In this document: piece by piece, positions 7,313-45,776 of the stretch
Layout: each line of letters begins with the position of its first letter
Numbering within the stretch: the stretch's first letter is position 1
DNA from: Macrostomum lignano
Lineage: Eukaryota
DNA: 64,000 nt
Direction: 5' to 3'
NCBI GenBank assembly: GCA_002269645.1
Contig: NIVC01001380.1
Coordinates: forward strand, 186,001 to 250,000
Position numbers and translations under genes: made by a program
The notes under the pieces: model-generated
The model's input: only the letters and a program-made list of their open reading frames with translations
The model's database searches: none
What the model was told of the DNA's origin: nothing

Positions 7313-8117
7313 TATAAATGGCAGCTTCAATCGTGATATTTTGTAAATCTAAGAAATTCTGATTTGGATAAAATTTTATAACATGCTCTTCTGCAGCAAA
7401 TGCCATTACTAGCAAAAATTTATAATTGCATCTATTTCCGATTGAGTTCTGAAAACTATTAAAAAGGCCTCTAAAAGCACTCTAAAACGATGCCTCAGTT
7501 GTCCATGAAATTACTAGCTAACTTCACCATGCACTAAGTGCTAATGGAAAATGTCACTCGAAAACTTTTTATAGTGATGAAGTTTTAATATGCAAGTATT
7601 GTAAGTATACAATTTTATTTTATACTGGAAATTCTTCGCTGCAGTTTCTAGGGCTACAGAAATGTTTTCATATGTATAATAAATGAATTTTTTCGTCTAA
7701 CATCCTACATGTACATGTACGAGTATGTGGCTTAAGACTGACCGGCATGAAATGAAAGCTCTAATTAAAGTTTCAGCACGCCTAAACACACCTATAAAGT
7801 TTTCGTAATCACCCTAAAATGTACGTAGATCGTAGAACAGAATTACGAGTGTAAAACCAAAAATTTCATTGCCATAAGCCTAAATGTACATCATGGAAGG
7901 GGGGGGGTCAGTAGCCCAGTGGTCAGTCTACATGCCTTATGATAAATCAAAGTGAGGGCTGCTGTACACTCCTGTGTGAGTGTGTGCCTTTGTGTATGAC
8001 TGCGTACGTATCTTGCGCGCTTGTGTGCCTGCTCAGGAGAGTCGGCGGAATGGGCAGCAATGCCTCTCGCCTGTTGTTTGACAATGGCGCTTAAAGTGCG
8101 CCAGGGTGCACACTGCC

Positions 8118-8355
8118 CCCTGGTGCTGGCGCCCCTGGTGCTGGCGCCTCTGGTGCTGGCGCCTCTGGTGCTGGCGCCTCTGGTGCTGGCGCCTCGATCT
8201 GGTGCTGGCGCCTCTGGTGCTGGCGCCCCTGGTGCTGGCGCCTCTAGTGCTGGCGCCTCTGGTGCCCCTGGTGCTGGTGCCCCTGGTGCTGGCTCCCCTG
8301 GTGCTGGCTCCCCTGGTGCTGGCGCCCCTGCTTCTGGCGCCCCTGGTTCTGGCGC
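8118..8355 (-). repeat. 15-bp GC-rich minisatellite (CTGGTGCTGGCGCCT), inverted relative to 9279-10742
   Basis: Reverse complement of the AGGCGCCAGCACCAG arrays downstream. Confidence 0.95.
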
Positions 8356-8449
8356 ACACATACACGTACAATTAAAGGTGTACTGCATGTATAGCTATGA
8401 GAGTAAAAATCAGGGGATCGGGCACACATGCAGGGTCAATTCATTTTAT

Positions 8450-8505
8450 ATTGGCTGTAACAGTTACAGCCAATGCCTGCGCACCACCGCAGATGCTTTA
8501 TATAG
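8450..8505 (+). promoter_or_regulatory. Candidate core promoter of the prepropeptide gene (CCAAT boxes + TATA)
   Basis: ATTGG 8450-8454, CCAAT 8470-8474 and TATATA 8499-8504, ~100 bp upstream of ATG 8600. Confidence 0.45.
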
Positions 8506-8599
8506 AACCGATTCAGAGGGCGCTCTTAGCAGCAACAGCTCATCGACAATTTAACAATCAGTAGGTTTGACGTAGAAAAAAATAATTAGCAACAAGACA

Positions 8600-8881
8600 A
8601 TGAGCAAATACACTGGACTTGTCATCATCCTTCTGGCGGCCGTGCTCTGCTCGATCTGTTTGGCTGAGCCGGCCAACAAACATCATCGGCTCGACCGTCT
8701 CTATAGGCGTCTAGTCCGGAATCCCGGCGCCCAGGACTACAACAGCTTTGCCATGGATCCTTTTCTAGGCGGGGACCGGCGCTATAAAAGACGCGGAGCC
8801 GGAGCTGGAGACCAGCAGCTGAACTCGATTGAGGATCGCATATTCTATGGCCATCCGGGACGCAGGTTCAGGCGCTCCTGA
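8600..8881 (+). CDS. Small secreted prepropeptide (neuropeptide/peptide-hormone-like precursor), 93 aa, intronless
   Basis: Signal-like MSKYTGLVIILLAAVLCSICLA; several RR/KRR sites; C-terminal G-RR amidation signal (..IFYGHPG-RR); tandem AATAAA at 8966-8971 and 8974-8979. Confidence 0.85.
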   Translation: MSKYTGLVIILLAAVLCSICLAEPANKHHRLDRLYRRLVRNPGAQDYNSFAMDPFLGGDRRYKRRGAGAGDQQLNSIEDRIFYGHPGRRFRRS

Positions 8882-8965
8882 ACTGCTGGACTGAACATCC
8901 TGAGCCGAGTTATAACAACCGAAAAACACCCTGTTTAGGAGAAGCACTGAATACGAAACAATTCA

Positions 8966-8979
8966 AATAAACTAATAAA
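8966..8979 (+). terminator. Tandem polyadenylation signals of the prepropeptide gene
   Basis: AATAAA twice, ~85-95 nt after the stop codon, followed by a T-rich tract. Confidence 0.6.
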
Positions 8980-9278
8980 TACCTTTTTGTCACATTATTG
9001 GACATTGCAACAGCAAATACGAGCAACCTGAAATTATTTTGCTAATTTTCAACTTTTTTTTATTTCCATGAAAATTCCACGCGGTGGAAACTCCATAGAC
9101 GGTTCTGGTAAAAAACTACACAATAGAGTTATTGTTTAGTTCTTCAGTTGGATGAAATTAGATCTCGCGGAATCTTTGAAATATTATTGTAAAGTTACCT
9201 GCAATCAGTGCCGAAAATTAGGAAGTAGAAGTACAATTTATACAAGCAATTACTTATTGATCTTATACTGTATTTACA

Positions 9279-10183
9279 GCACCAGAGGCGCCAGCACCAG
9301 GGGCGCCAGCACCAGAGGCGCCAGCACCAGAGGCGCCAGCACCAGAGGCGCCAGCACCAGAGGCGCCAGCACCAGAGGCGCCAGCACCAGAGGCGCCAGC
9401 ACCAGAGGCGCCAGCACCAGAGGCGCCAGCACCAGAGGCGCCAGCACCAGTGGCGCCAGCACCAGAGGCGCCAGCACCAGAGGCGCCAGCACCAGAGGCG
9501 CCAGCACCAGAGGCGCCAGCACCAGAGGCGCCAGCACCAGAGGCGCCAGCACCAGAGGCGCCAGCACCAGGGGCGCCAGCACCAGTGGCGCCAGCACCAG
9601 AGGCGCCAGCAACAGGGGCGCCAGCACCAGGGGCGCCAGCACCAGTGGCGCCAGCACCAGAGGCGCCAGCAACAGGGGCGCCAGCACCAGGGGCCCAGCA
9701 CCAGGGGCGCCAGCACCAGGGGCGCAAGGACCAGGGGCGCCAGCACCAGAGGCGCCAGCACCAGAGGCGCCAGCACCAGAGGCGCCAGCACCAGAGGCGC
9801 CAGCACCAGAGGCGCCAGCACCAGAGGCGCCAGCACCAGAGGCGCCAGCACCAGAGGCGCCAGCACCAGAGGCGCCAGCACCAGAGGCGCCAGCACCAGA
9901 GGCGCCAGCACCAGAGGCGCCAGCACCAGAGGCGCCAGCACCAGGGGCGCCAGCACCAGAGGCGCCAGCACCAGAGGCGCCAGCACCAGAGGCGCCAGCA
10001 CCAGAGGCGCCAGCACCAGGGGCGCCAGCACCAGGGGCACCAGCACCAGAGGCGCCAGCACCAGGGGCGCCAGCACCAGTGGCGCCAGCACCAGAGGCGC
10101 CAGCAACAGGGGCGCCAGCACCAGGGGCCCAGCACCAGGGGCGCCAGCACCAGGGGCGCAAGGACCAGGGGCGCCAGCACCAA
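9279..10183 (+). repeat. 15-bp GC-rich minisatellite (AGGCGCCAGCACCAG, ~60 copies)
   Basis: Near-perfect tandem array; its ORFs in all frames (RGAST, PEAPA, LVLAP) are repeat artefacts. Confidence 0.95.
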
Positions 10184-10276
10184 CTGCATGTTTGTCGTTT
10201 TACTTTACAGGTAAGCCAGTCGTCCTTTAAGCGGCACTGAATCGTCGAAAGCGAGAAAAAAAGAGATAAATTTTCA

Positions 10277-10348
10277 TCACAATTTAATTCCAGGCAAGCT
10301 TCCAAATTGAAGCGCAGTTTGCCGTCTGCCGTCGTCAATAAGCAGGTG
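10277..10348 (-). CDS. Possible terminal exon of the Kirrel-like gene (HLLIDDGRRQTALQFGSLPGIKL*)
   Basis: TTTTTAG acceptor and phase-0 compatible with the donor at 12044; no homology support. Confidence 0.25.
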   Translation of the reverse strand, partial: HLLIDDGRRQTALQFGSLPGIKL

Positions 10349-10549
10349 CTAAAAATAGCTGTCATCAACCGTCTGTATGCCTATCTGCCTGCTAACATTA
10401 TTAATCAATTAGCACTGGAAAGCTTCCAGCTCATTCCGAGAAAGCTTTTATAGTCTCAGCCATATGGCCGGGATTAAGTCGCACAGTCAGACAGACTGGC
10501 AGGCGCAGGGGGATCAGAATGGCAGCGGGATTTTTTTATTTGAGCGGTC

Positions 10550-10742
10550 CGGGGCGCCAGCACCAGGGGCGCCAGCACCAGGGGCGCCAGCACCAGGGGC
10601 GCCAGCACCAGGGGCGCCAGCACCAGGGGCGCCAGCACCAGGGGCGCCAGCCCAGGGGCGCCAGCACCAGGGGCGCCAGCACCAGGGGCGCCAGCAACAG
10701 GGGCGCCAGCACCAGGGGCGCCAGCACCAGAGGCGCCAGCAC
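10550..10742 (+). repeat. 15-bp minisatellite, same family as 9279-10183
   Basis: GGGGCGCCAGCACCA units. Confidence 0.9.
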
Positions 10743-11399
10743 TTCCCTCTTGCCCCTCAGGCCACCAGGCTGAAACATCCACAATATTTTTTTCGAAAAA
10801 TAATTTGAACTGTTCAAAAAACGATTTTAGTAGTTTGTGTTTTTAATGAGCAATTTAATTGTTATAACTTTTTTCGTTAAACAATGCCGCCTGTGCATTC
10901 GACAATGGATGACAGAAATGCTTGTTTTTTAGTGAAAAAAACAGAACTCAAAATCGAGTGCAGTTCCAATTAATTAAACAAATTGATTTCTTTCAGGCGC
11001 AATTCCGCGCAAACTGATTAAAAAACAGGCCAGAAAGTCAATTTTTTACAGATACAGCTTTTTTACAGCTATTTATCAATTTCATTTAGTCTAACATTTT
11101 CGCGCAAGGTTAACCAGTAGCTGTGTACAAAAATTAGTCAGGTTAAATTAAGTTAACAAAATCTTAGAAACCAATGAGCGCAAAATGAGATCCTAGACCT
11201 GAATTGACAAAACGATGAAGCAAATCCTTAGAAATGTGGAGTAGATTATAACAAAACAAAAAAATTATCCAACAAATATTCTTGTTGCACTTCAGTTTTT
11301 AATTCGCGAGTTTATTCTTTTAGAAATTTTGTTTTAAACATGCAGTTTTACGATCTTGAACATTTTCCCTGGTAGGAAAATCCCGAATGCTTCAAGAAA

Positions 11400-12037: not shown

Positions 12038-12043
12038 CTAAAC

Positions 12044-12380
12044 CTCAGTAACCGCAAAGTCTTCATCTATGGTGGCGGGCTGCAGCGGCCTTCGACGCCT
12101 CCTTCGACTGCCGGCTCGATGGCTGACAGCTCCAGCGATGGCGGGCAGGATCGCAGACTCGCTGCCAGCAACAGGCGCCAGTTGCTGCAGCCCGTGAACT
12201 GGGCAGGTTGGATCTGGAGGTGACAGACTGCTGATCCCGGCTGCCACGGGAGGCGGGGTGCCGCTGCTGGACGCGGTCGAACCCGCGGAGCCGCCAAGCG
12301 TTGGTTGCACCTGGAATCTCACCACACTGGCCGGCACTGCCGCCATCGCCGCGTAGCCGGAGTCGCAACTTTTTAAACTG
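12044..12380 (-). CDS. Kirrel/Neph-like gene, cytoplasmic-tail exon
   Basis: NAGNAG acceptor (12380 or 12377), phase 2 matching the donor at 14613. Reads SLKSCDSGYAAMAAV..PTCPVHG..EDFAVTE; donor GAG|GTTTAG. Confidence 0.65.
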
Positions 12381-12905: not shown

Positions 12906-13375
12906 TGTATGTGATTTGGAATTCGATCCTTAGACTTAGATTTGATTTTCAAGACACAAGCTGGAGTTTTGTATTTTTTGTATTAGTTTTTTAGTTTTTT
13001 GTATTTAGTTTTTGTATTTTTGTAGTTTTTTGGAGTCACTGGCTGCTGCTTCAGCCAGTGATGAATGGTATTCTGCTCTTTTAAAAAAATTGAGACTGCA
13101 AAATTTGCTCGTAAACCAACGTATGCTCTCGTTGGGAATTTACAGAAGTCAAATATAGCAGCTGAAGCAAAGAGCTTTTCCAGGAAATGTACGAACTCTT
13201 AATTTCCCGAATGCTCTTTTTGAATAAAAATGACTTTTCTTCTGCACAGTTGAATCTGCATGGAGAGCAGCTTCAGCTTCGGGACTTTGATGTTGGACTC
13301 CTCATCCCAAGCTTGAGAGGCTCCTTTAATCCCATTTTAGCTAAATCAAAAAGATAGACACTTAACTAACTACAT

Positions 13376-14594
<1,219 letters not shown>

Positions 14595-14612
14595 ATTTAA
14601 TTAACCACTCAC

Positions 14613-15050
14613 TCATCTCTCCCAGTCTCCTCAGCAGTGGGCTGCATCAGCGGTGATGGCGGAGGCGGCGGTGTGGAAGGCGGCGGCAAGGTGAGGCTGC
14701 CGCTGCTACCCCGTCGCCCCTGGGTGCCAAGAAAAGTCTGCAGCAGGGCGCCAGATTTCCTTGGCTGACAGCCGCCATTCAGAAGCAGCCGCCGTTGCAG
14801 ACTCTCGTCATCAAACTGGCCTCCATCGTCCAGCCTCACCAGTTTGAGTTTATTCTCAGACTCGTCGCAGCTGCAGCCGCTGCCGCTGGATTCCGACCGG
14901 CTGTCGCGGCGTCTCTCGCCCGGCTTCAATCGATTCCTTTGATGTTGCCGCCGCTCGTCCGGCTGGTTGGCCCGGGAGCTCAGATCTTGCTGGCGTCGTC
15001 GCCGGTTTAGCAGAAGCAGAAGACCGAGGAACAGCAGCAGCAGCAGCAAC
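14613..15050 (-). CDS. Kirrel/Neph-like gene, 3' half of TM/juxtamembrane exon (split by LINE)
   Basis: LLLLLLFLGLLLLLNRRRRQQD.. (end of TM plus basic stop-transfer); donor GA|GTGAGT at 14613/14612. Confidence 0.85.
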
Positions 15051-18000
15051 CGATCAGCCCCATAGGGTTGGTGCACCTTCTGGTGCGGTCAAAGGAGCTG
15101 CCTCATCGCGGCGACCCGGTTTTAACACCAAAGCTCCTAAGTCGTGGTCTTCAACCCATCTGCCCTCGCGTGCCTTCGGCACGGCTGGCAGGGAGACCGG
15201 TTGTTTTGCTGCTGTCTATCTGTCCCGCCTCGTCCTCTTTGCGCTCGCCCTCACTACGCTCGCCGGGGACATCGAAACTAATCCCGGCCCAGCCTGCAAC
15301 TCATGCAACGGCCCAATCCGCACGGGCATGCACAGCCTGCCATGTGAGGTCCCAGAATGTTCCGAGCGCTGTCACTGTCAGAAGAAATGCAGCGGTATGC
15401 ACCGCGCCGAGATTGTCCGATCTCCGTGGCGCTGCTCTGTGCACCGCCCCCTTGAATTGGACTCGGCATCCGCTGCGCACCTGCGTGACCTCCCGGCACC
15501 CGAGCCCCGCATGTCTCAGCCAACGCGCTGTCACAGCTGCTCAGGGCCCATCCGCACTGGCACTACTCCGCTCACTTGCGCTGCCAAAGGTTGCGCTCTG
15601 GCCTGCCACCGCTCCAGCAACTGCAGCCACATCTCGCGGTATCGTGGCGCCCCCAGCTGGCTCTGCCCTCTGCATCGGCAGCAGGCGGTCCAACTTCCAG
15701 GCGCACACTCCATCTTCCGCCGCCCTGCTCTTACCCGCAGACAAGCTGATCCCACTACCGACAGAGATCTGAACGATCCAAGCGACGCCCAGCGCCGCTA
15801 TTGTGCTAAATGCTCGACCGCCATTCGCCGCGGCGTCGCGTTTGTCAAGTGCAACTCCTGCAGCGCCGCTTACCACAAGTGCTGCACCGGCCTTAATCGC
15901 AACGCCGCGGATGCCGCGGCTCGCAGCCCTTGGGACTGCCCAGTTTGCACAGCGCGCACCCAAGGAGCTCCCGCCCCTTCGGCAGCTACGTCGCGCGTCC
16001 CCCTGCAGGACAAGGTCGCCCGCGACACTAAATTTGCCGACAGCCTCCGTCTTCTCCAGTGGAACGCCGACGGAATCGCCTCCAAACTGCCCGAGCTGGC
16101 CGAACGCCTCTCCGACAGCGATATCGACATTGCAGCTGTCCAAGAAACGAAGCTCTCCAACCGCACGCAGCTGCCAAAGATCAACGGGTACATCGCCGTG
16201 CGCAAAGACCGCGGCGACGGCAGCGGTGGAGGTCTGCTGCTTCTCATCAGAGACAAGCTGGCCTTCCGCTCGTCCCCGCAACCCACGGCCACAGCGGACA
16301 TGGAAATCCAGACGGTCGACATCCAGATATCTACCGCTAACTGGATTACCATCACCAACGTCTATGCTCCACCTGTCCGCACCTGCGTCGAGGATCGACA
16401 GCTTCCGGACTGGAATCACCTGGGCACTCCGTCTCAGGGCATCATCCTAGGAGACTTCAACAGCCACTCTCCGGCCTGGGACCCTATACAGCCCCAGGAC
16501 GAACGAGGCTCCACGCTCCTGGACTGGTCCATCGACACGCAACTGGAAATCCTTAACGACGGCTCGCCCACCAGAGTCAATAAAGCCACAGGTGGCGAAA
16601 GCTCACCGGATGTGTCCTTCGCCTCCTCAAAGCTGGCTAGCAAATGCACCTGGCAAGTCTCCGATGACCTCGGCAGTGATCACACGCCGATTGTGATCCG
16701 CCTTGACCTCAAGGTTAGGACCTTGCCTAAGGCCCAAAGCCGTCTCATATGGCGCAAACAAGGGGTCGACTGGAATGCTTTCCAAACGGTCGTCGAGGAC
16801 AAATTTAAAGCCCTTCACAAAGAGCATCTTACCTTTGACGCCAGAGCCAAACGCTTTAATGATATAGTCATGCAAGCGGCAAACCTTTGCATCGGCAAAG
16901 TCCGTACCTCGCACAGACCGCGTCCCTGGCTCACCCCTGAACTCAAAGCGGCGATTAAGCTCCGTAACCGCCTCAGGCGCTCCGTTGGCGAGAATAGAGA
17001 AGATTGGCTCAGCGCCTGCGCCAACGTTCACAAAATTGCCAGGGCAACGAAAGAGGCTGCTTGGCGTGACACGATAACCGATCTTGAGAAAGAGCCCAAC
17101 TCGAACAAGGCGTGGAAGTTCATCCGCAGCCTTAACGGCACTCCGGACTCCAACTGCCCTAATGAGGCCCTCCAGGTCGGCAACAAAGTGTTAACAGACC
17201 CTAGAGACAAAGCCAACGCCTTTGCCAAGCAGTACGCCTCTGTCAGCAGGTACCACATTTCCCATTCGGATCGCGCTACTATCCGAGAAGCCAAAGCCAT
17301 CCTTCGGCTTCCCCTTCCGCTCCCAGGTTCGACCCACGACGGTTACGCCGCCATCACCGAGCAGGAACTGGACTCCGCCATCCAACACCAGCGTGCTAAC
17401 GGCGCTGCTGGCGCCGACGAGGTCACGCCTCGGTTCATTAAGGCCCTTGGCCCGCTCGCCCGCGCAGAGCTGCTTAGTCTCTTCAACTGGTCCTTCCAGC
17501 ACGCGGCCGTCGCTCAATCCTGGCGCACCGCGATTATTATTCCCCTGCTCAAGGCTGGAAAGTCAGCTCGGGACATCGCGGCCTTTCGCCCCATCAGCCT
17601 CACATCCTGTATTGTCAAGCTGCTCGAGCGCATCCTGGTCACTAGATTGCACCACCTGGCTGAGCGCCACGGCTGGATCTCCCCGAACCAGGCGGGGTTT
17701 CGGGCCAACTACTCCTGCGAGGATCAGCTCCTGAGAGTCACCCAAGACATCAGCGACGGGATGAACCTCAAACCATCTGAACGCACGATCATTGCTCTGC
17801 TTGATTTTTGTAAAGCCTTTGACAAAGTGTGGCGTGAGCGCCTCATCACCGTTATGGCACGCAAACGCGTCCCTCTTGTCTTTATCAAATGGACTGCGGC
17901 CTTTTTGCGCCATCGCATTGCCCGCGTGCAACTCCACGGTGCTCGCAGCTCACCGGTTATCATGCGCCAGGGCCTCCCGCAAGGATCGGTCATCGCTCCG

Positions 18001-19756
18001 TTTCTCTTCCTTATTTTCATTGACACGGTCAATGACGTGGTCAACCCGCCGGCAGAGATCTCCATGTATGCCGACGACATCGCCCTCCGCGCCCGCCACC
18101 GCAACAAGCTCGAGGCTCAACGCGCTGTGCAAAGAGCACTCGACAACGTGGCCCGCTGGAGCAATGAGCACAAAATGGTCCTAAACCCAGACAAAAGCGA
18201 GGCCGCCTTTTTCTCCACGGACACCAGCGAAGCCGCCTGGTCCCCGGCTATCTCTATCGAAGGCCGGAACCTGCGGCACAATCCAACGCCTCGGCTGCTG
18301 GGCCTCACACTGGACCGCACTCTGAGTTTCCGCAGTCATCTGGAGCACGTGTGCAATCGGACCACTTCCCGATGCCGTCTCCTCGCTTGCCTGGCCTCCA
18401 AGGAATGGGGATGGTCCAAAAAACTCCTGCTCCGCATTTACCGTGCCATGCAACTTAGCATCATTAACTTCGCTGCGCCGGCCTGGCACCCTTGGCTCTC
18501 TGAATCCGCGTTTCAACAGCTGGAGAGAGCGCAGAACGCAGCCCTTCGTATTGTCACAGGACAACACCGCACGACTCCGGTTGAGGCCCTTAGGCTGGAA
18601 GCTGGCATCTGCTCCGTCCGCACTGGTAGCAATGTTATATGCCTGACGGCCTTCGAAAGAGCTCAGCGCCTCCCGGATTCTCACCCGTGCCGCATTGCCG
18701 CCACTGGAAACACAGCACACAGGCTACGCAGGAACAGTTGGCGGAACCACGTCACCGACCTGCTGCCACTCATTGCTAGCTCGGTCACGCCGCGCGCCAT
18801 GATCTGCACTGCTCGTCCGCCGCCTTGGGACCCTTTCTCTACCGACGTGCGTGTCGACATGGCGTTGCCGGAACCCGGTCCCGCGCGCACAGCCACGGCC
18901 ATCGACACTATCCGCCACCTCCCAGGCCTGATCACCATCTACTGCGACGGCTCGGCATCAGGCGGCACGACCAATGGCGGCGCCTCAGCCATCGTCACGA
19001 CCGGTGACCCAGCCCACCCTATCATCCTGGCGACTCTTCAACAGCGCGGCGCGCCCTCCACATCCTCGTTCGAAGAGGAGCTTCGCGCCGCCTCTCTCGC
19101 CATCGGCTGGATCAACCAAGCTGCTCTCACCGCGGCTACCAACATCTGCTCAGACAGCCAATCTATGCTCCGCGCTCTGGCCAGCGGCAACCCCAGAATC
19201 AGATCTGCACTACCTACTGCATCTGCCGAAATCACCTGGCAGTGGGTTCCGGGCCACCAGAATATTCCTGGCAACGAGCTGGCCGACCAAGCAGCCAAAG
19301 AGGCCACCACGCTCGTGTCTCCCGCTAGTCAGATCAGCATCCACAGCGCCAAAAACGTCATCAGAAGATCCGTCCTCGATCCCCCGATCCGCCACGAGCG
19401 CACCCGGCACGCGTACCGGCTTCTCAACCGTCAATTGGAAGAGGACTCCATCACCAACCGTGCCGATGCGGTGCTTCTTGCGCGCTTACGCTCAGGTCAC
19501 TGCACTCTTTTCAACGCGTATCGCAGCATTGTCGACCCGGCCGTCGACCCAGCATGTCACCGCTGCGGCCATCCCTGCGATGACCTGGAACACTGGCTTG
19601 ACTGCCCAGCTCTCGCCGGCACCAGGCTCCGCCTTCTTGGAGGACCCACGACAGACATCAGCAGCATTTCCGCCGACCCCCTCGGGTTGATAGCGCTGGC
19701 CAGACACTGCCCTTAGCTCTGCCTGGGCGCGTACCACCAAAACAACAACAACAACA
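15051..19756 (+). mobile_element. Intact non-LTR retrotransposon, Ingi/I-group-like (2A - PHD x3 - APE - RT - RNase H - zinc knuckle)
   Basis: 12-bp TSD AGCAGCAGCAAC (15039-15050 and 19757-19768); (AAC)n tail at 19738-19756; one uninterrupted ORF. Confidence 0.95.
15052..19716 (+). CDS. LINE polyprotein: 2A-like peptide, PHD fingers, AP endonuclease, reverse transcriptase, RNase H
   Basis: Frame is open from 15052 (first in-frame ATG 15328). Motifs: GDIETNPGP; APE LQWNADG..VQETK..GDFNSH..SDHTPI; RT QAGFR..LDFCKAFD..GLPQGSVIAP..YADD; RNase H YCDGS..EEEL..SDSQS..WVPGHQNIPGNELAD; C-terminal CHRC..H..C. Confidence 0.95.
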   Translation, partial: DQPHRVGAPSGAVKGAASSRRPGFNTKAPKSWSSTHLPSRAFGTAGRETGCFAAVYLSRLVLFALALTTLAGDIETNPGPACNSCNGPIRTGMHSLPCEVPECSERCHCQKKCSGMHRAEIVRSPWRCSVHRPLELDSASAAHLRDLPAPEPRMSQPTRCHSCSGPIRTGTTPLTCAAKGCALACHRSSNCSHISRYRGAPSWLCPLHRQQAVQLPGAHSIFRRPALTRRQADPTTDRDLNDPSDAQRRYCAKCSTAIRRGVAFVKCNSCSAAYHKCCTGLNRNAADAAARSPWDCPVCTARTQGAPAPSAATSRVPLQDKVARDTKFADSLRLLQWNADGIASKLPELAERLSDSDIDIAAVQETKLSNRTQLPKINGYIAVRKDRGDGSGGGLLLLIRDKLAFRSSPQPTATADMEIQTVDIQISTANWITITNVYAPPVRTCVEDRQLPDWNHLGTPSQGIILGDFNSHSPAWDPIQPQDERGSTLLDWSIDTQLEILNDGSPTRVNKATGGESSPDVSFASSKLASKCTWQVSDDLGSDHTPIVIRLDLKVRTLPKAQSRLIWRKQGVDWNAFQTVVEDKFKALHKEHLTFDARAKRFNDIVMQAANLCIGKVRTSHRPRPWLTPELKAAIKLRNRLRRSVGENREDWLSACANVHKIARATKEAAWRDTITDLEKEPNSNKAWKFIRSLNGTPDSNCPNEALQVGNKVLTDPRDKANAFAKQYASVSRYHISHSDRATIREAKAILRLPLPLPGSTHDGYAAITEQELDSAIQHQRANGAAGADEVTPRFIKALGPLARAELLSLFNWSFQHAAVAQSWRTAIIIPLLKAGKSARDIAAFRPISLTSCIVKLLERILVTRLHHLAERHGWISPNQAGFRANYSCEDQLLRVTQDISDGMNLKPSERTIIALLDFCKAFDKVWRERLITVMARKRVPLVFIKWTAAFLRHRIARVQLHGARSSPVIMRQGLPQGSVIAPFLFLIFIDTVNDVVNPPAEISMYADDIALRARHRNKLEAQRAVQRALDNVARWSNEHKMVLNPDKSEAAFFSTDTSEAAWSPAISIEGRNLRHNPTPRLLGLTLDRTLSFRSHLEHVCNRTTSRCRLLACLASKEWGWSKKLLLRIYRAMQLSIINFAAPAWHPWLSESAFQQLERAQNAALRIVTGQHRTTPVEALRLEAGICSVRTGSNVICLTAFERAQRLPDSHPCRIAATGNTAHRLRRNSWRNHVTDLLPLIASSVTPRAMICTARPPPWDPFSTDVRVDMALPEPGPARTATAIDTIRHLPGLITIYCDGSASGGTTNGGASAIVTTGDPAHPIILATLQQRGAPSTSSFEEELRAASLAIGWINQAALTAATNICSDSQSMLRALASGNPRIRSALPTASAEITWQWVPGHQNIPGNELADQAAKEATTLVSPASQISIHSAKNVIRRSVLDPPIRHERTRHAYRLLNRQLEEDSITNRADAVLLARLRSGHCTLFNAYRSIVDPAVDPACHRCGHPCDDLEHWLDCPALAGTRLRLLGGPTTDISSISADPLGLIALARHCP

Positions 19757-19826
19757 AGCAGCAGCAACAGCAGAGCCGCCCCGGCTGCGGCCCCGGCGGC
19801 GGCTACGGCTACCGACGGCAGATCGG
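19757..19826 (-). CDS. Kirrel/Neph-like gene, 5' half of TM exon (split by LINE)
   Basis: Acceptor GTCTCCCTTCTTCAG|, phase 1 matching the donor at 20442. Reads PDLPSVAVAAAGAAAGAALLLLL. An alternative same-phase acceptor lies ~30 nt upstream. Confidence 0.8.
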
Positions 19827-19882: not shown

Positions 19883-20321
19883 GGTGTACATGCCTGACCT
19901 GAGGTGTACATGCCTGACCTGAGGTTTACATGCCTGACCTGAGGTTTACATGCCTGACCTGAGGTGTACATGCCTGACCTGAGGTGTACATGCCTGACCT
20001 GAGGTGTACATGCCTGACCTGAGGTGTACATGCCTGACCTGAGGTGTACATGCCTGACCTGAGGTGTACATGCCTGACCTGAGGTGTACATGCCTGACCT
20101 GAGGTGTACATGCCTGACCTGAGGTGTACATGCCTGACCTGAGGTGTACATGCCTGACCTGAGGTGTACATGCCTGACCTGAGGTGTACATGCCTGACCT
20201 GAGGTGTACATGCCTGACCTGAGGTGTACATGCCTGACCTGAGGTGTACATGCCTGACCTGAGGTGTACATGCCTGACCTGAGGTGTACATGCCTGACCT
20301 GAGGTGTACATGCCTGACCTG
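19883..20321. repeat. 20-bp minisatellite (GTGTACATGCCTGACCTGAG, ~22 copies)
   Basis: Near-perfect tandem units inside a Kirrel-like intron. Confidence 0.97.
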
Positions 20322-20441
20322 ATTAGAAAGTATAATAACTACTAAGTAAGTTATTATGTTATGATTTTCTTCGGGAATTGCAACAAAATAAGTTCCGCGA
20401 AATTAAAAGTGCAAAAAAATGACTTGTATTTTTGTACTCAC

Positions 20442-20593
20442 GCTCAACGTTGAGGCTGATTGTGGCCGAATCGCTGCCCAGAGGGTTCACAGCAGTGCAG
20501 GTGTACTTTCCCGAGTCCTTCGGTGTGGGTCGGTCGATTTGCAGGTAGGCAGACACCGTGGTTAAGTCCAGGTCTTCTCGGTAGATTCGGATC
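20442..20593 (-). CDS. Kirrel/Neph-like gene exon, Ig5 C-terminal half
   Basis: CATTTCAG|G acceptor; AYLQIDRPTPKDSGKYTCTAVNPLGSDSATISLNVE (Ig D-x-G-x-Y-x-C motif); donor C|GTGAGT. Confidence 0.9.
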
Positions 20594-20625: not shown

Positions 20626-20950
20626 CTTGACCTTGTTTGACCCTAGATACTTGACCTTATTTGACCCCAGATACTTGACCTTGTTTGACCCTAGATACTT
20701 GACCTTATTTGACCCCAGATACTTGACCTTGTTTGACCCTAGATACTTGACCTTGGTTGACCCTAAATATTTGACCTTGTTTGACCCTAGATACTTGACT
20801 TTGTTTAACCCTAGATACTTGACCTCGTGTAACCCTAGATATTTGACCTTGGTTGACCCTAGATACTTGACCTTGTTTAACCCTAGATACTTGACCTCGT
20901 GTAACCCTAGATACTTGACCTTGGTTGACCCTAGATATTTGACCTTGGAA
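20626..20950. repeat. 24-bp minisatellite (TTGACCTTGTTTGACCCTAGATAC)
   Basis: Tandem units. Confidence 0.9.
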
Positions 20951-21033: not shown

Positions 21034-21663
21034 CTGGCAGTCTCCGTCACTCGACTGCCATCCTGCCGCCTCCATGTCACCCCGGGCTCGATTCCCACCG
21101 TCTCCGGCAAGGGCACCGCTTCGATTCGACACTCCAGACGAGCCGGCGCTGCCGAACCGCCTTCGCCGCCTTCAACTTCGACGCCCCTGATGACAACGCC
21201 GGCAGCTCTGGCGGCTACCCGCGGCACCGCCGACACCCTTGGCGGCCGGGTTCGCGCCACCAGAATTCTCCGACGAGCGGGTGCGAACCCCGGCGCCGCA
21301 GCGGTGCAAGTGTACTCGCCGAAGTCGCTAGGCCGAAGTCCGGTCAGTCGCAGAGTCGGCGAGCGCGAGACCCAGTCCAAACTGCTGCCGCGCCGCCAGA
21401 TGTAGTCAGGTCGCGGGTTCGAGTCCGCTTGGCAGGACGCTTCAACGGAGCCTCCAGGCGGGGCAGGGTAGAGCGGCCCACCCTGACCCGAGACGAACTT
21501 TGGCGGGTAGCGAACTCGGAGGCGGACTGGAGTGGCGTCGCCTCTGGCGAGGCTGTTCACGGCTGAGCAGCCCAGCAACTTGCCGTTGTGCCGGCGGCTC
21601 AGGATGAGGCGGAGACTGGACTGTTGGTGCACGGAGCTGGGGTCCAGGTCTTCCAGGTACCAG
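21034..21663 (-). CDS. Kirrel/Neph-like gene exon, Ig3 end - Ig4 - Ig5 start
   Basis: CCACCAG|C acceptor, phase 2; SWYL..HNGKLLGCSAVNSL..YPPKF..CQADSNPRPDYIW..SDFGEYTC..LECRIEAVP; donor AG|GTGAGA. Confidence 0.92.
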
Positions 21664-21682
21664 CTGGTGGTGGGTGGGGAGT

Positions 21683-21980
21683 GTTGAACTGAGTGTCCGA
21701 GAAGTGCTAAACAGAGTGTCCGAGAAGTGCTGAACTGAGTGTCCGAGAAGTGCTGAACTGAGCGTCCGAGAAGTGTTAAACTGAGTGTCTGAAAATAACT
21801 AAATTGGGTGTCCGAGAAGTGCTGAACTGAGTGGCCGAGATGTGTTGAACTGAGTGTCCGAGAAGTGCTAAACAGAGTGTCTGAAAATAACTAAATTGGG
21901 TGTCCGAGAAGTGCTGAACTGAGTGGCCGAGATGTGTTGAACTGAGTGTCCGAGAAGTGCTGAGCTGAGTGTCCGAGAAT
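21683..21980. repeat. ~23-bp minisatellite (TGCTGAACTGAGTGTCCGAGAAG)
   Basis: Tandem units starting ~20 nt from the acceptor at 21663. Confidence 0.85.
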
Positions 21981-22299: not shown

Positions 22300-23345
22300 T
22301 AACAAACTCTCTGTCTAACAGGTGACACTATCCACTGTCTAACAGGTGACACTATCCTCTGTCTAACAGGTCACACTAATCCTGTCTAACAGGTGACACT
22401 ATCCTCTGTCTAACAGGTGACACTATCCTCTGTCTAACAGGTGACACTATCCTCTGTCTAACAGGTGACACTATCCTCTGTCTAACAGGTGACACTCCTG
22501 TCTAACACGTGACACTATCCTCTGTCTAACAGGTGACACTATCCACTGTCTAACAGGTGACACTGTCCTCTGTCTAACAGGTGACACTATCCTTTCTAAT
22601 AGGTGACACTATCCTGTCTAATAGGTGACACTATCCTGTCTAATAGGTGACACTGTCCTCTGTCTAACAGGTGACACTATCCTTTCTAATAGGTGACACT
22701 ATCCTGTCTAACAGGTGACACTCCTGTCTAACACGTGACACTATCCTCTGTCTAACAGGTGACACTATCCACTGTCTAACAGGTGACACTATCCTCTGTC
22801 TAACAGGTGACACTATCCTGTCTAACAGGTGACACTATCCTCTGTCTAACAGGTGGCACTATGCTGTCTAACAGGTGACACTATCCTGTCTAATAGGTGA
22901 CACTATCCTGTCTAATAGGTGACACTGTCCTCTGTCTAACAGGTGACACTATCCTTTCTAATAGGTGACACTATCCTGTCTAACAGGTGACACTCCTGTC
23001 TAACACGTGACACTATCCTCTGTCTAACAGGTGACACTATCCACTGTCTAACAGGTGACACTATCCTCTGTCTAACAGGTGACACTGTCCTCTGTCTAAC
23101 AGGTGACACTATCCTTTCTAATAGGTGACACTATCCTGTCTAATAGGTGACACTATCCTGTCTAATAGGTGACACTATCCTGTCTAATAGGTGACACTGT
23201 CCTCTGTCTAACAGGTGACACTATCCTTTCTAATAGGTGACACTATCCTGTCTAACAGGTGACACTATCCTCTGTCTAACAGGTGACACTATCCTGTCTA
23301 ACAGGTGACACTATCCTCTGTCTAACAGGTGGCACTATGCTGTCA
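22300..23345 (+). repeat. 22-24-bp minisatellite (CTGTCTAACAGGTGACACTATCCT), inverted copy of 34943-37393
   Basis: Exact reverse complement of the AGGATAGTGTCACCTGTTAGACAG unit. Confidence 0.95.
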
Positions 23346-23824: not shown

Positions 23825-24945
23825 ATCAGTCTCTCCCTCTCAGTCTCTCCTTCTCAGTCTCTCCTTCTCAGTCTCTCCTTCTCAGTCTCTCCTTCTCAGT
23901 CTCTCCTTCTCAGTCTCTCCTTCTCAGTCTCCTTCTCAGTCTCTCCTTCTCAGTCTCTCCTTCTCAGTCTCTCCTTCTCAGTCTCTCCTTCTCAGTCTCT
24001 CCTTCTCAGTCTCCTTCTCAGTCTCTCCTTCTTAGTCTCTCCTTCTCAGTCTCTCCTTCTCAGTCTCCTTCTCAGTCTCTCCTTCTCAGTCTCTCCCTCT
24101 CAGTCTCTCCCTCTCAGTCTCTTCCTCTCAGTCTCTCCATCTCAGCCTCTCCCTCTCAGTCTCTCCCTCTCAGTCTCTTCCTCTCAGTCTCTCCATCTCA
24201 GTCTGTCCCTCTCTGTCTCTCCCTCTCAGTGTCCCCTCTCCGTCTCTCCCTCTCAGTCTCTCCCTCTCAGTCTCTTCCTCTCAGTCTCTCCATCTCAGTC
24301 TCTCCTTCTCAGTCTCTCCCTCTCAGTCTCTCCCTCTCAGTCTCTTCCTCTCAGTCTCTCCATCTCAGTCTCTCCCTCTCAGTCTCTCCCTCTCAGTCTC
24401 TTCCTCTCAGTCTCTTCCTCTCAGTCTCTCCATCTCAGCCTCTCCCTCTCAGTCTCTCCCTCTCAGTCTCTTCCTCTCAGTCACTCCATCTCAGTCTGTC
24501 CCTCTCTGTCTCTCCCTCTCAGTGTCCCCTCTTAGTCTCTCCCTCTCAGTGTCCCCTCTCCGTCTCTCCCTCTCAGTCTCTCCCTCTCAGTCTCTTCCTC
24601 TCAGTCTCTCCATCTCAGTCTCTCCTTCTCAGTCTCTCCCTCTCAGTCTCTCCCTCTCAGTCTCTTCCTCTCAGTCTCTCCATCTCAGTCTCTCCCTCTC
24701 AGTCTCTCCCTCTCAGTCTCTTCCTCTCAGTCTCTTCCTCTCAGTCTCTCCATCTCAGCCTCTCCCTCTCAGTCTCTCCCTCTCAGTCTCTTCCTCTCAG
24801 TCTCTTCCTCTCAGTCTGTCCCTCTCTGTCTCTCCCTCTCAGTGTCCCCTCTTAGTCTCTCCCTCTCAGTGTCCCCTCTCCGTCTCTCCCTCTTGGTCTC
24901 TCCCTCTCAGTGTCCCTCCTCTCAGTCTCTTCCTCTCAGTCTGCC
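23825..24945. repeat. Pyrimidine-rich ~14-bp minisatellite (TCTCTCCCTCTCAG)
   Basis: Tandem units with internal higher-order duplication. Confidence 0.92.
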
Positions 24946-25083: not shown

Positions 25084-25395
25084 CTGTAAGTGAAATTTTC
25101 CGGCCTTCCAGTGGCCAAGCACTCGGCCTCGATACGATCCTGCTCTTTGAACTCCTTCTCACCAGCATCCTGACCTTCAACCGACTGCGCTGTCGTTGCT
25201 AGGGACGCCCCTGGCAATGGTAGCCGACGCAGGCGCAGTCGAACAACCGGCGGTGAGCGAACGTACAGCCGAGTTGATGCGGTCAGCCCGCCATCTTCAA
25301 AGCCTTCAACGCGGGCATCGCAGGCGATCGGCAGGCCATGGTGCGACTCTGTGATGGCTCCGGCTGCCAGCTGCAGGTGGGCCCGCGCTGTCAGG
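25084..25395 (-). CDS. Kirrel/Neph-like gene exon, Ig2 end - Ig3 start
   Basis: CCTGCAG|C acceptor, phase 2; HHGLPIACDARV..LYVRSPPVVRL..IEAECLATGRPENFTY; donor AG|GTACGG. Confidence 0.9.
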
Positions 25396-25444: not shown

Positions 25445-26412
25445 GCCCTCCCGCTCTCTCCTGCTCTCTCCCGCTCTCTCCCGCTCTCTCCCGCTCTCTC
25501 CTGCTCGCTCCCGCTCTCTCCTGCTCTCTCCCACTCTCTCCCGCTCCCTCCCGCTCTCTTTAGCTCTCTCCCGCTCTCTCCCGCTCCCTCCCACTCTCTC
25601 CCGCTCCCTCCCGCTCTCTCCCGCTCTCTCCCGCTCTCTCCCGCTCTCTCCCGCTCTCTCCCGCTCTCTCCCGCTCCCTCCCGCTCCCTCCCGCTCTCTC
25701 CCGCTCCCTCCTGCTCTCTCCCGCTCCCTCCCGCTCTCTCCCGCTCTCTCCCGCTCTCTCCAGCTCTCTCCCGCTCCCTCCCGCTGTCTCCCGCTCCCTC
25801 CCGCTCTCTCCCGCTCTCTCCCGCTCTCTCCCGCTCTCTCCCGCTCTCTCCCGCTCTCTCCCACTCCCTCCTGCTCTCTCCCGCTCCCTCCTGCTCTCTC
25901 CCGCTCCCTCCCGCTCTCTCCCGCTCTCTCCCGCTCTCTCCAGCTCTCTCCCGCTCCCTCCCGCTGTCTCCCGCTCCCTCCCGCTCTCTCCCGCTCCCTC
26001 CCGCTCCCTCCCGCTCTCTCCCGCTCCCTCCTGCTCTCTCCCGCTCCCTCCCGCTCTCTCCCGCTCTCTCCCGCTCTCTCCAGCTCTCTCCCGCTCCCTC
26101 CCGCTGTCTCCCGCTCCCTCCCGCTCTCTCCCGCTCTCTCCCGCTCTCTCCCGCTCTCTCCCGCTCTCTCCCGCTCTCTCCCACTCCCTCCTGCTCTCTC
26201 CCGCTCCCTCCCGCTCTCTCCCGCTCTCTCCCGCTCTCTCCCGCTCTCTCCCACTCCCTCCCGCTCTCTCCCGCTCCCTTCCGCTCTCTCCCGCTCTCTC
26301 CCGCTCTCTCCCGCTCTCTCCCGCTCTCTCCCGCTCCCTCCCGCTCTCTCCCGCTCTCTCCCGCTCTCTCCCGCTCTCTCCCGCTCTCTCCCGCTCTCTC
26401 CCGCTCTCTCCC
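25445..26412. repeat. 10-bp minisatellite (CTCTCCCGCT)
   Basis: Fills the intron between exons 25395 and 26447. Confidence 0.95.
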
Positions 26413-26446
26413 TCTCCCATTGTCTCGATCAGCCGGCGGGACTCAC

Positions 26447-26855
26447 AGGTGGTCTGGCTCATTCTCACTGAGCTGGTCCATCACAGCCCACCCGTGCATG
26501 GGCTGGTCAAACACGGTCCGCACCTGAGGCACCTGGTACAACGGCACCCTGACTCGTTTATTAGAATCCACCGTCCAGAAAACTGTCGGAGCGGGATTCG
26601 AACCTCTGACCTCGCAGACTAGCAGCAGCCGCTCGCCAACGGAAGCCACCGCCCAGTCTGCCACAGGCTGCAACAGCAAATCCGCTTGAGTCGCCGTCCA
26701 GTTTCCTACAAACAGCCGGAGACTGTCGGCATTTTTCAATACGCGCAGATAAGCGATGCTGGACTTTACTGGCCGGTCCGATCCGGCAACCACTTGGCAA
26801 CCGTAGGAGCCTCTGTCGGACAGCTGTAGCTGAGAGATTGTCAGGTCGTGAATTC
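26447..26855 (-). CDS. Kirrel/Neph-like gene exon, Ig1 end - Ig2 start
   Basis: TTCGCAG|GA acceptor, phase 1; IHDLTISQLQLSDRGSYGCQV..LVCEVRGSNPAPTVFW; donor CT|GTGAGT. Confidence 0.92.
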
Positions 26856-26949: not shown

Positions 26950-27748
26950 TAAAAAATCGGCGCTACTTCAGAGAATCGGCGCCACCACAGAAAATCAGCG
27001 CCAACCCAGTAGATCGGCACCACCCGAGAAAATCAGGGCTCCCCTGAAAAATTGGCGCCACCCCAGAAGGTCGCCGCAACCCCAGAGTATTGGCGCCACC
27101 CTAGAAAATCTACGTCACCCCAGAGTATCGGCGCCACCCCAGAGAATCGGCGTCAACAACTTAGAAGATCGGCGCCACCCCAGAAAAACTGCGCCACCCC
27201 AGAATATCGGCGCCATCCCAGAGGATCGGCGCCACAACAGAGAATCGGCGCCACCTCAGAGAATCGGCGCCACAACAGAGAATCGGCGCCACCTCAGAGA
27301 ATCGGCGCCACAACAGAGAATCGGCGCCACAACAGAGAATCGGCGAAACAAAAGAGAATCGGCGCCACAACAGAGAATCGGCGCCACCTCAGAGAATCGG
27401 CGCCACAACAGAGAATCGGCGCCACCTCAGAGAATCGGCGCCACAACAGAGAATCGGCGCCACAACAGAGAATCGGCGCCACAACAGAGAATCGGCGAAA
27501 CAAAAGAGAATCGGCGCCAAAACAGAGAATCGGCGCCACAAAAGAGAATCGGCGCCACAACAGAGAATCGGCGCCACCCCATAGAATCGGCGCCACCCCA
27601 TAGAATCAGCGCTACCCCATAGAATCGGCGCCACCCCATAGAATCAGCGCTACCCCATAGAATCAGCGCTACCCCATAGAATCGGCGCCACCCCATAGAA
27701 TCAGCGCTACCCCAGAGAATCAGCGCTACCCCAGAGAATCGGCGCCCT
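26950..27748. repeat. 19-20-bp minisatellite (AGAGAATCGGCGCCACAAC)
   Basis: Tandem units with a GGCGCC core. Confidence 0.92.
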
Positions 27749-28497
27749 CCGAAACATAAACTTAATAAAAAAATTCACAGTTCAGCTGGTACGGCTCAAA
27801 CCCGTGACCTCGGCACAAGAGTACACCTCTTCGGTTAGCGAATAGCTATTCCCTATAATAAACATAGATAATCTTCTAAAATGGATTTTTTGTTGTCTCG
27901 CACTTTTTATAATCGATGTTATTTTGAAGGCTTCGAGCAAGAATGAAAATGTCTTAGAAGCAAGCGATTTCAAATCCGCGCCAAAAATAGATTGCAATTA
28001 CACACACTATATATCCTTGAGCTTTAGTAAAAGGCGAATGGGAAAGTGGAATGAATTTTTTTGTCCCGGTAAACCGAGACCGAAACTCTGACTGGAGTGC
28101 AGACGGACAGACTGTCTTTTTTGCGTCCCAACAGCTCCCCCCTCGAAGTTTTCGATTAGCTATCAATTTTTTCCCGCATTTTTCCCCCATAGCTATGCCT
28201 GCCTTCTGAACATTTTTTCTTTTTTTAAGCCGAGGAAGAGAAGCAGACAGAGAGCACCTGGGAATCGCCCCACCTGACAAGAAAATGCTGGAAAATTATT
28301 CGCTTGTTAACAGCTCAGGTAAAGATGACGGCAGCTGACAGAATCACGGTCGAATTGCTCGAAGTTCGTGTCTTGTAAATAATTTTATTCAAGCCAAAAC
28401 TTTGACACGAAACTGTCAGGGTATCAAGGTGATGCAGGTAAATCAAGGTGATGAAATTTTGAGTTGCAGTCTGAAAAATATGATGTCTGTGGTTTGA

Positions 28498-29205
28498 GTA
28501 AGGCGCCATTTGCTCTAGTGAGGCGCCATTTGTACTAGTGAGGCGCCAACTACTCTAGTAAGGCGCCATTTGCTCTAGTGAGGCGCCATTTGCTCTATTG
28601 AGGCGCCATTTGCTCTAGTGAGGCGCCATTTGTACTAGTGAGGCGCCAACTACTCTAGTAAGGCGCCATTTGCTCTAGTGAGGCGCCATTTGCTCTAGTG
28701 AGGCGCCATTTGTACTAGTGAGGCGCCAACTACTCTAGTAAGGCGCCATTTGCTCTAGTGAGGCGCCATTTGCTCTAGTGAGATGCCAATCCCTCTAGCG
28801 AGAGGGTGCCAACTACTCTAGTGAGGTGCCAACTACTCTAGTGAGGCGCCAACTACTCTAGTGAGGTGCCAACTACTCTAGTGAGGCGCCAACTACTCTA
28901 GTGAGGCGCCAACTACTCTAGTGAGGCGCCAACTACTCTAGTGAGGCGCCAACTACTCTAGTGAGGCGCCAACTACTCTAGTGAGGCGCCAACTACTCTA
29001 GTGAGGCGCCAACTACTCTGGTGAGGCGCCAACTACTCTAGTGAGGCGCCAACTACTCTAGTAAGGCGCCATTTGCTCTAGTGAGGCGCCATTTGCTCTA
29101 GTGAGATGCCAATCCCTCTAGTGAGGCGCCATTTGCTCTAGTGAGATGCCAATCCCTCTAGCGAGAGGGTGCCAACTACTCTAGTGAGGCGCCAACTGCT
29201 CCAGT
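28498..29205. repeat. 20-21-bp minisatellite (AGTGAGGCGCCATTTGCTCT / AACTACTCT)
   Basis: Tandem units with a GGCGCC core. Confidence 0.92.
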
Positions 29206-29237
29206 GAAGCGGCACCCGGTCTCTATCCAGTGCTCAC

Positions 29238-29457
29238 CTGAATGTGTCAGACTGGCAATGCTGAACCGGGGATCTCTAACAGTGTCGGACATGGAACTAG
29301 CGGCAATCATGAGGTTATCCCTGTGCCAATAAACCCGGACTGGCAATGCGGTTTGTCTCCAACCAGTCCGGCACGCTAACGTGACGGAGTCGCCAACTTT
29401 TCGGCTGACATCGGCGGGACCGCGCACAATCCGCATTGGGCCTCTGTGGCGGCGCAG
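29238..29457 (-). CDS. Kirrel/Neph/SYG-1-like gene exon, Ig1 N-terminal half (5' boundary approximate; signal-peptide exon not found)
   Basis: IVRGPADVSRKVGDSVTLACR..VYWHRDN..RFSI; donor CAG|GTGAGC joins in frame to 26855. Five Ig domains plus a TM and a cytoplasmic tail match the Kirrel/Neph/Roughest architecture. Confidence 0.85.
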
Positions 29458-43075: not shown

Positions 43076-43222
43076 CGGCTACACCTGTGCACAGTCTGGA
43101 GAAAGATCTAAGAATTAATCTACCTTTTTTAGAGTGAAAGCTACTATGAACAACGCTTATATACGTGGAAAAAGTTGATAAATCTATAAGTTTATGGTAA
43201 CTATAAATATATATATAGTAGA

Positions 43223-43352
43223 CTACAGCAACATGTTGTACGGGTCCTCCAGACAGGCCTTGAATTCGGCCAGCCATTTGGCTCCAACCGCGCCGTCAAC
43301 CACGCGATGATCGCTGCATAGGGTGGCCCGCATCACTGTGCTGGTGGCGTAG
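43223..43352 (-). CDS. DLAT: DLAT (pyruvate dehydrogenase E2), last exon
   Basis: ATTCCAG|C acceptor; VMRATLCSDHRVVDGAVGAKWLAEFKACLEDPYNMLL* contains the catalytic DHRxxDG motif. Confidence 0.95.
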
Positions 43353-43464
43353 CTGGAATCAATTAAATAAGCCAAATCTGGTGATGAGCTGCATTTATTG
43401 AGTAAACCAGAGTTATTCACGAGATCACGAGATCAGCTTTCTCAAAGTTTCAGATGTTTGAGTA

Positions 43465-44305: not shown

Positions 44306-44340
44306 ACCTCGATTCCTCAGTATCAGTGAAGGTTACTCAC

Positions 44341-44573: not shown

Positions 44574-44657
44574 CTGAGGATTAGGATGGTCAGCGGGTAT
44601 GACTTCGTTAATATCAGACATCTCACCTTCACCTGGTAACTGCAATATAGAAAAGTG

Positions 44658-45623: not shown

Positions 45624-45776
45624 GCCTGTTATAACTTTGACAGAAAACCCTGTTGAACTGTGGCAAAGCCGCAAAAAGCATGGATGAAAAAAGACACACA
45701 AAATGAGGTAAATCATACTACTACTGTAAGCAGTATTATTTGGATATACACATAAATAAGTTAAAACATTTCCCAC

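Follow-up and report, generated by a model that had tools for sequence, protein, structure and literature searches.

A young, low-copy long interspersed nuclear element (LINE) of the flatworm Macrostomum lignano lies antisense within the transmembrane exon of a gene for a protein with five immunoglobulin (Ig) domains. We studied it in a 64,000-nucleotide stretch of contig NIVC01001380.1 (positions 186,001 to 250,000, assembly GCA_002269645.1), which is referred to as the window and numbered from its first letter. The explanation that we favor, with a probability of about 0.85, is that a member of a family of LINEs with an apurinic/apyrimidinic-type endonuclease (APE) entered a (CAG)n tract by target-primed reverse transcription, the tract encoding on the opposite strand the poly-Leu core of the membrane helix of a Kirrel/IrreC-like gene. 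The evidence comes from an exact target-site duplication, from an in-frame exon that is restored when the element is removed, and from the recurrence of CAG at the insertion sites of all five copies examined.

Insertion site and reconstruction of the empty site

The sequence AGCAGCAGCAAC is present as an exact repeat at 15039-15050 and 19757-19768. Upon deletion of 15051-19768 in silico, the minus strand reads ...PDLPSVAVAAAGAAAGAALLLLLLLLFLGLLLLLNRRRRQQD..., a transmembrane helix followed by an RRRR stop-transfer segment. An earlier, sequence-only reading of the window had placed a LINE antisense in a transmembrane exon extending from 14613 to 19826, and this placement is borne out by the duplication and the excision, with 19826 corresponding to the exon acceptor and 14613 to the exon donor. 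The 5' boundary of the element was set by comparing the 5' junctions of five copies (the copy in the window and four others), which yielded the following features around the insertion.

15039..15049, plus strand: left target-site duplication, AGCAGCAGCAA, an exact repeat of 19757-19767
15050..19756, plus strand: full-length retrotransposon of 4,707 bp without long terminal repeats (non-LTR) and with a single open reading frame (ORF); the 5' end is CCGATCAG and the 3' end ...ACCACC-A4(CAA)4CA, termini that are common to the four other copies
19757..19767, plus strand: right target-site duplication, AGCAGCAGCAA

The element (15050-19756) is on the plus strand and the host exon on the minus strand. 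The duplication had been described as a perfect 12-bp repeat; the repeat is exact, but only 11 bp are unambiguous, while the C at 15050 may belong either to the duplication or to the element, and the location inside a (CAG)n run means that low complexity accounts for part of its perfection. That the target-site duplications are real is nevertheless shown by the duplicated CAA(C) interruption at this site and by the non-repeat duplication CTCAGCAGT at another copy (L004, below). The restored segment AAGAAAGAALLLLLLLLFLGLLLLLNRRRR aligns after excision with the transmembrane segment and the CRR(R/S/K) motif of four relatives, and the helix and its basic anchor are matched both in M. lignano paralogs and in relatives from parasitic flatworms, as the proposal of a restored helix with a basic stop-transfer implied.

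Other copies of the family and their targets

The element is the sole copy of its family in the window. Four other copies, all in assembly GCA_002269645.1, were found by looking up the proteins that cluster with its product. They are 99.66-99.79% identical to the window copy over 4.7 kb, with unrelated flanks.

Window copy: duplication AGCAGCAGCAA(C), 11-12 bp; lies in the transmembrane exon of the host gene, antisense to it
L001 copy: duplication of about 14 bp of GCAGCAG...; within a CCHC gag-like ORF of another element
L002 copy: duplication of about 13 bp; no called gene at the site
L003 copy: duplication of about 11 bp; long upstream open frame
L004 copy: duplication CTCAGCAGT, 9 bp; antisense in a coding exon for a Src-type kinase

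In all five copies the 5' end CCGATCAG is constant and directly follows a target ending in ...CAGCAGC, ...GCAA or ...CAGT, and at the 3' end a (CAA)4-5 tail is followed by (A/G)CAGCAG... or by CTCAGCAGT. Every site contains CAG, always on the sense strand of the element, and (CAG)>=3, that is, at least three units, is present at four of the five; the duplications range from 9 to 14 bp. By comparison, (CAG)>=3 or (CTG)>=3 covers only 0.135% of the positions in 137 kb of surrounding M. lignano sequence. Because all five copies are located in CAG sites against this background, the family is target-specific: within the five copies examined, it inserts specifically into CAG/CTG triplet repeats. The flanking repeats are derived from the target and not from the element, since their lengths differ among the copies and the duplication in L004 is not a repeat. 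The presence of the LINE in the poly-Leu stretch of the transmembrane exon is thus explained by the preference of its family for (CAG)n. Two of the five copies (window and L004) have hit coding exons. The site of L001 (9270-9720) lies in a CCHC zinc-knuckle (gag/ORF1-like) frame of another retroelement, in a poly-Ala stretch coded by GCA.

As to mechanism, the endonuclease, the N-terminal fingers described below, or both, would recognise the CAG/CTG tract and nick the CTG strand, and target-primed reverse transcription into the (CAG)n tract would then place the element and leave the duplication. Because CAG/CTG triplet runs are concentrated in coding sequence, such a family would be prone to hit exons.

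Structure and age of the element

The element has no LTRs, a simple-repeat 3' tail and target-site duplications of variable length. Its ORF fills the element from the second base to 19716 and leaves no room for another, so that it is a single-ORF element with no ORF1. The following features were identified in it.

15052..19716, plus strand: single long ORF of 1,554 codons plus a stop at 19714-19716, open from the second base of the element; the first in-frame ATG is at 15328
15259..15291, plus strand: 2A-like ribosome-skipping motif LAGDIETNPGP, codons 70-80; D[VI]ExNPGP is kept at the N-terminus in six of seven relatives (29-40% identity)
15295-15444, 15529-15675 and 15802-15948, plus strand: three Cys/His-rich PHD-like motifs of about 50 residues each, between the N-terminus and the endonuclease, read from the sequence
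16054..16683, plus strand: APE domain, residues 335-547 (Pfam Exo_endo_phos, E 8.7e-13; Exo_endo_phos_2, E 9.2e-18)
17578..18240, plus strand: reverse transcriptase (RT) domain, residues 843-1063 (Pfam RVT_1, E 7.5e-31), with YADD at 18067-18078
18931..19305, plus strand: RNase H domain, residues 1294-1418, downstream of the RT (Pfam RNase_H, E 3.2e-12)
19555..19605, plus strand: C-terminal CCHC motif CHRCGHPCDDLEHWLDC, read from the sequence

The element is therefore an APE-type non-LTR retrotransposon with the domains that define the RNase H-bearing "I group". No Pfam match to a PHD domain was obtained for the window copy at E<=0.01, and the product of one relative gave weak PHD matches. The closest match to the ORF is M. 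lignano PAA62320.1, listed at 100% identity, yet two residues differ. The ORF clusters with three further M. lignano proteins, and the next relatives are metagenome proteins with at most 40% identity.

Compared with the majority sequence of the five copies, the window copy has four private substitutions, all of which are synonymous, and its protein is therefore the consensus of the five. Private changes across the five copies comprise 14 synonymous and 9 non-synonymous ones, a mild signal that the differences between copies arose in replicating lineages. The full ORF is kept in four of the five copies, with a 1-bp deletion in L004. These features agree with the description of the element as full-length and very young, and they point to a very recent insertion of a copy that is probably still competent for retrotransposition. 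The ORF had also been called intact; the frame is open throughout, but there is no in-frame ATG before codon 93, downstream of the conserved 2A motif at codons 70-80.

The 2A motif and the start of translation

2A motifs have been described in single-ORF APE-type LINEs without ORF1, including Ingi and L1Tc (Luke et al., PMC3894237). Here, the first in-frame ATG lies past the motif and within the first Cys motif. An ATG upstream of the 2A motif is present in four relatives (P0003-P0006). It also precedes the motif in each of two relatives of about 39% identity that are arranged head to tail, with (CAA)n and (CAC)n tails, in a metagenome contig (L005:1-7400; ENA ERZ27293226, k119_1288419).

Comparison with Rfam, at gathering thresholds for the whole window and at E<=10 for the 5' end, gave no ribozyme, HDV-like (hepatitis delta virus-like) or other, that would define where the element starts. 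Folding of the first 281 nt is not better than that of shuffled sequences (z = -0.69), with no sign of an unusual 5' structure. That a host exon supplies the start through an in-frame fusion does not hold for the copies at large: the window copy is antisense to its host, and in L001 the frame has a stop 11 codons upstream of the junction and no ATG between the two. A long open frame upstream that includes a Met is present in L003 alone.

M. lignano has a spliced leader of 35 nt whose last three bases are ATG, and the acceptors that it uses terminate in CAG (PMC8629364). If the leader is joined at the CAG of CCGATCAG (bases 6-8 of the element), the ATG falls exactly in frame (ATG/CCC CAT AGG); the CAG units of the target repeat upstream of the element in L001-L003 all share this frame. 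The LINE might thus borrow its start codon from a trans-spliced leader, in which case insertion into CAG would be part of its expression strategy by supplying both acceptor and frame, and the 2A motif would discard the borrowed leader peptide. We regard this as a doubtful proposal: the acceptor context is poor, and a trans-spliced template would be expected to leave leader sequence at new copies, where none was seen. If true, it would describe a LINE for which coding triplet repeats are the preferred targets.

The host gene

The host gene is encoded on the minus strand, and seven exons were placed.

29238..29443, minus strand: first half of Ig1 (V-set), with a provisional acceptor at 29443
26447..26855, minus strand: second half of Ig1 and first half of Ig2 (tblastn, junctions)
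25084..25395, minus strand: end of Ig2 and start of Ig3 (tblastn, junctions)
21034..21663, minus strand: end of Ig3, Ig4 and first half of Ig5 (tblastn with the tapeworm protein P0040, E 1.8e-13)
20442..20593, minus strand: second half of Ig5 (tblastn, junctions)
14613..19826, minus strand: transmembrane/cytoplasmic exon split by the LINE; acceptor ...ttcttcag/CC at 19826, donor GA/GTGAGT after 14613
12038..12380, minus strand: putative last exon, ...SLKSCDSGY...TCPVH...ATIDEDFAVTEV plus stop (ending FAVTEV), in phase with the donor at 14613 and homologous to the tail of paralog P0061

All six junctions (29238/26855, 26447/25395, 25084/21663, 21034/20593, 20442/19826 and 14613/12380) are GT-AG and phase-compatible. 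The sequence-only reading likewise had the phases joining cleanly; its exon list was one short, and 12380-12038 has been added. When spliced from the empty site, the seven exons give a coding sequence of 848 codons with no internal stop. Past the helix, the excised exon encodes a low-complexity tail as far as the donor after 14613. The junction EETGRD/DSLKSCDSGY is matched by EEAGQEDSVRSCDSGY in P0061, and the motifs TCPVH and QPA..ED..AV..TE are common to both proteins. The empty-site sequence gave no match in a metagenome scan, as expected for a flatworm.

The Pfam domains of the host are V-set, C2-set_2, Ig_3 (three stretches) and I-set, making up five Ig domains in total. The exons are collinear with the tapeworm protein P0040, which has 778 residues, five Ig domains and a transmembrane helix, and whose tail ends in QVTHV. 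Identity is low: 26% to the tapeworm protein ending in THV, and 44-48% to three M. lignano paralogs recovered by an exhaustive representative search, whose source names are mixed (Ig-like, Nephrin, KIRREL1 or Dscam2-like). Neph proteins end in a PDZ-binding THV. The predicted C-terminus of the host, FAVTEV*, is of the PDZ-type form T-x-V, the exon that encodes it having been assigned by its phase and by homology to the paralog tail. In comparisons of the ectodomain, Robo2 (5e-13) was matched ahead of SYG-2 and SYG-1 (about 2-4e-7), while a relative from a fluke (P0173) matches D1-D2 of Drosophila Rst (Roughest) in one stretch (E 4e-11) and also Ig5 of human Kirrel3. As a homolog query, the full reconstructed protein returned nothing, with low-complexity words swamping the candidates, and a query with the Ig domains only returned one tapeworm protein.

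The host thus resembles Kirrel/Neph, IrreC-Rst, Kirre and SYG-1 in having five Ig domains (a V-set followed by a C2-set_2), a single helix, a basic anchor and a T-x-V end. It differs from the Kirrel family in being fast-evolving, in its poly-Ala/poly-Leu helix, in the Arg/Ser/Pro-rich low-complexity segments of its tail and in its weak similarity to SYG-1/SYG-2. Judged by architecture, it is reasonable to regard the host as a divergent five-Ig gene of Kirrel/IrreC-like type. The original label "Kirrel/Neph-like" accordingly stands for the architecture (five Ig, helix, T-E-V tail) but not for specific similarity, in which Robo and SYG-1/SYG-2 are about equal.

The introns of the Ig gene are all packed with minisatellite arrays of 10-24-bp units, some of which give long spurious ORFs (19883-20322, 20626-20947, 21680-21980, 22308-23338, 23826-24942, 25448-26419, 26953-27746 and 28497-29211); the 20-bp array at 19883-20322 is 99% homogeneous. 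A (TAAC)n microsatellite of 1.2 kb (13363-14595, about 307 units) starts 18 bp past the donor of the interrupted exon and fills much of the last intron.

Predicted consequences of the insertion

On the host strand the target (CAG)n reads as CTG codons, and these specify the poly-Leu core of the helix. Translation of the disrupted exon across the junction gives AAGAAAGAALLLLLL, then VVVVVLVV from the antisense (CAA)n tail and RAQAELR... for 89 residues, before the first in-frame stop.

19492..19494, minus strand: TGA that is the first stop in the frame of the disrupted allele, reached 89 codons inside the antisense LINE and preceded by ...AALLLLLLVVVVVLVV

The disrupted allele hence encodes Ig1-5, AAGAAAGAALLLLLLVVVVVLVV, 89 foreign residues and a stop, and a hydrophobic anchor, L6V5LVV, remains. 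Its product would stay anchored in the membrane and would lose the native tail of about 280 residues together with the C-terminal TEV, a PDZ-type ligand. Alternatively, the disrupted mRNA may be unstable or degraded because the stop is located far upstream of the last intron. The claim that the insertion disrupts the gene is thereby narrowed: replacement of the tail is probable, whereas loss of anchoring is not predicted.

A comparable case is provided by L004:8753-13456 (NIVC01000001.1 of the same assembly), where the copy is antisense in the last coding part of a Src-type kinase with SH3, SH2 and kinase domains. The insertion is right after ...FPSTDSGYRATAE in the C-terminal tail. The deposited model of this kinase continues 264 bp into the LINE to the equivalent stop, such that its last 88 codons are antisense LINE. 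By analogy with c-Src, a tyrosine in this tail may be regulatory.

Alternative explanations

Repeats are extremely abundant in this genome, minisatellites fill the introns, and the assembly is that of a polyploid, so that the junctions could be an artefact in which a LINE copy was collapsed or mis-joined at this place via CAG repeats. We hold this to be improbable: both junctions have the form that is standard for the family (duplication, CCGATCAG ... (CAA)n, duplication), the flanks, once joined, make a single coherent exon that is in frame and can be aligned with the paralogs, and a mis-join would not create a matching duplication with the CAA(C) variant. The same interruption, along with the 9-bp non-repeat duplication CTCAGCAGT in L004, argues against an ordinary, untargeted insertion whose duplication looks perfect merely through low-complexity CAG on both sides. 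A (CAG)n run would be expected to contain short exact repeats, and the sample amounts to five copies, but all five are independent and lie in CAG sites in one orientation against a background of 0.135%, which makes a lack of targeting scarcely credible.

It is possible, if on balance unlikely, that the host locus, as a paralog in the Kirrel-like family of M. lignano, was decaying or unexpressed before the LINE arrived, so that the insertion was effectively neutral and no working gene was disrupted. Among 1.84 billion representatives, no database protein is at least 50% identical to the host product, although this set does include the three M. lignano paralogs at 44-48%. When ORFs of the window were looked up by exact match, namely the last-exon ORF with two start choices and the LINE ORF, no record and hence no called gene was returned, and the first exon, which would encode the signal peptide, was not found. 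M. lignano is also called a hidden polyploid in PMC10468722, from which redundancy appears likely. Against decay are the seven exons that give 848 codons without a stop, the junctions, which are all canonical and in phase, and the retention of Ig hallmark residues and of the tail motifs SCDSGY, TCPVH and C-terminal TEV relative to P0061.

The absent first exon and the lack of a close database protein also weigh against our explanation of a targeted insertion into a Kirrel/IrreC-like gene, as do several further points. No reads, transcripts or empty-site allele were retrieved that bear on zygosity, expression or the fate of the mRNA. The five copies were all reached via annotated full-length ORFs, and the target preference is not a genome-wide census. 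The site of L004 has just two CAG units. More distant relatives are without an evident CAG target, the ends in L005 being (CAA)n/(CAC)n and the relative in L006, which lies within another LINE, having a poly(A) tail, and the specificity can therefore not be extended beyond the M. lignano family. Finally, the ORF has no in-frame ATG upstream of the 2A motif, which leaves its translation start unexplained.

Other features in the window

A gene of the dihydrolipoamide acetyltransferase type (E2 of a 2-oxoacid dehydrogenase complex) with several exons is located at 43000-49400 on the minus strand; it encodes a pair of lipoyl domains, one domain for E3 binding and a catalytic one. Another LINE, degenerate and unrelated to the first (61270-64000, minus strand), runs off the end of the window; its APE (62619-63998) and RT (61814-62740) are in different frames, and the RT is 27% identical to that of the LINE studied here. 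Long GC-rich arrays of short repeats at 8000-10850 read (PGA/APE/STRGA)n in all frames on both strands, and between them a short isolated ORF (8576-8878) has a start resembling a signal peptide and no Pfam match.

Relation to known elements and significance

The usual view of target-specific LINEs is that they persist because their targets are multicopy sequences where insertion does no harm. The R1-clade families Waldo, Mino, Kibi and Koshi, and Dong on (TAA)n, are reportedly among those that aim at microsatellites, as Kojima and Fujiwara are said to have described in 2004. Togen on (TG)n and some HERO families are likewise cited as microsatellite-targeting LINEs in PMC4640811. The family described here resembles such elements in its use of the same simple repeat in a fixed orientation, its constant ends, its low copy number and the high identity of its copies. 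It differs in that the target is (CAG)n and the (CAA)n tail is not identical to the target, and also in that the target is often coding and no "safe haven", with two of five copies in coding exons.

The second group of relevant elements is the 2A LINEs (L1Tc, Ingi and the metazoan families of Odon/Luke/Ryan; PMC3894237), with which the element shares the absence of ORF1 and the D(V/I)ExNPGP motif near the N-terminus. Ingi-type elements also have APE, RT and RNase H. What sets the M. lignano element apart is that no ATG precedes its predicted 2A in frame and that three Cys-rich fingers follow the motif. No CAG-specific LINE was found in the open-access subset of the literature. While microsatellite-specific LINEs and 2A LINEs are both already known, the CAG target, the bias to coding sequence and the missing initiation codon appear to be novel on the literature searched.

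A family aimed at CAG/CTG would be biased to coding exons, in particular those for poly-Gln, poly-Leu, poly-Ala and poly-Ser, and in this one genome the tails of two signalling proteins are truncated. The locus may be useful as a marker, since so young an insertion is likely to be polymorphic between lines or homeologs. The family offers a natural setting for studying the recognition of a triplet repeat by an APE-type LINE, and is also relevant to the start of translation in 2A LINEs. In an organism that serves as a model for regeneration, it is a candidate for repeatedly and predictably disrupting genes or remodelling C-termini.

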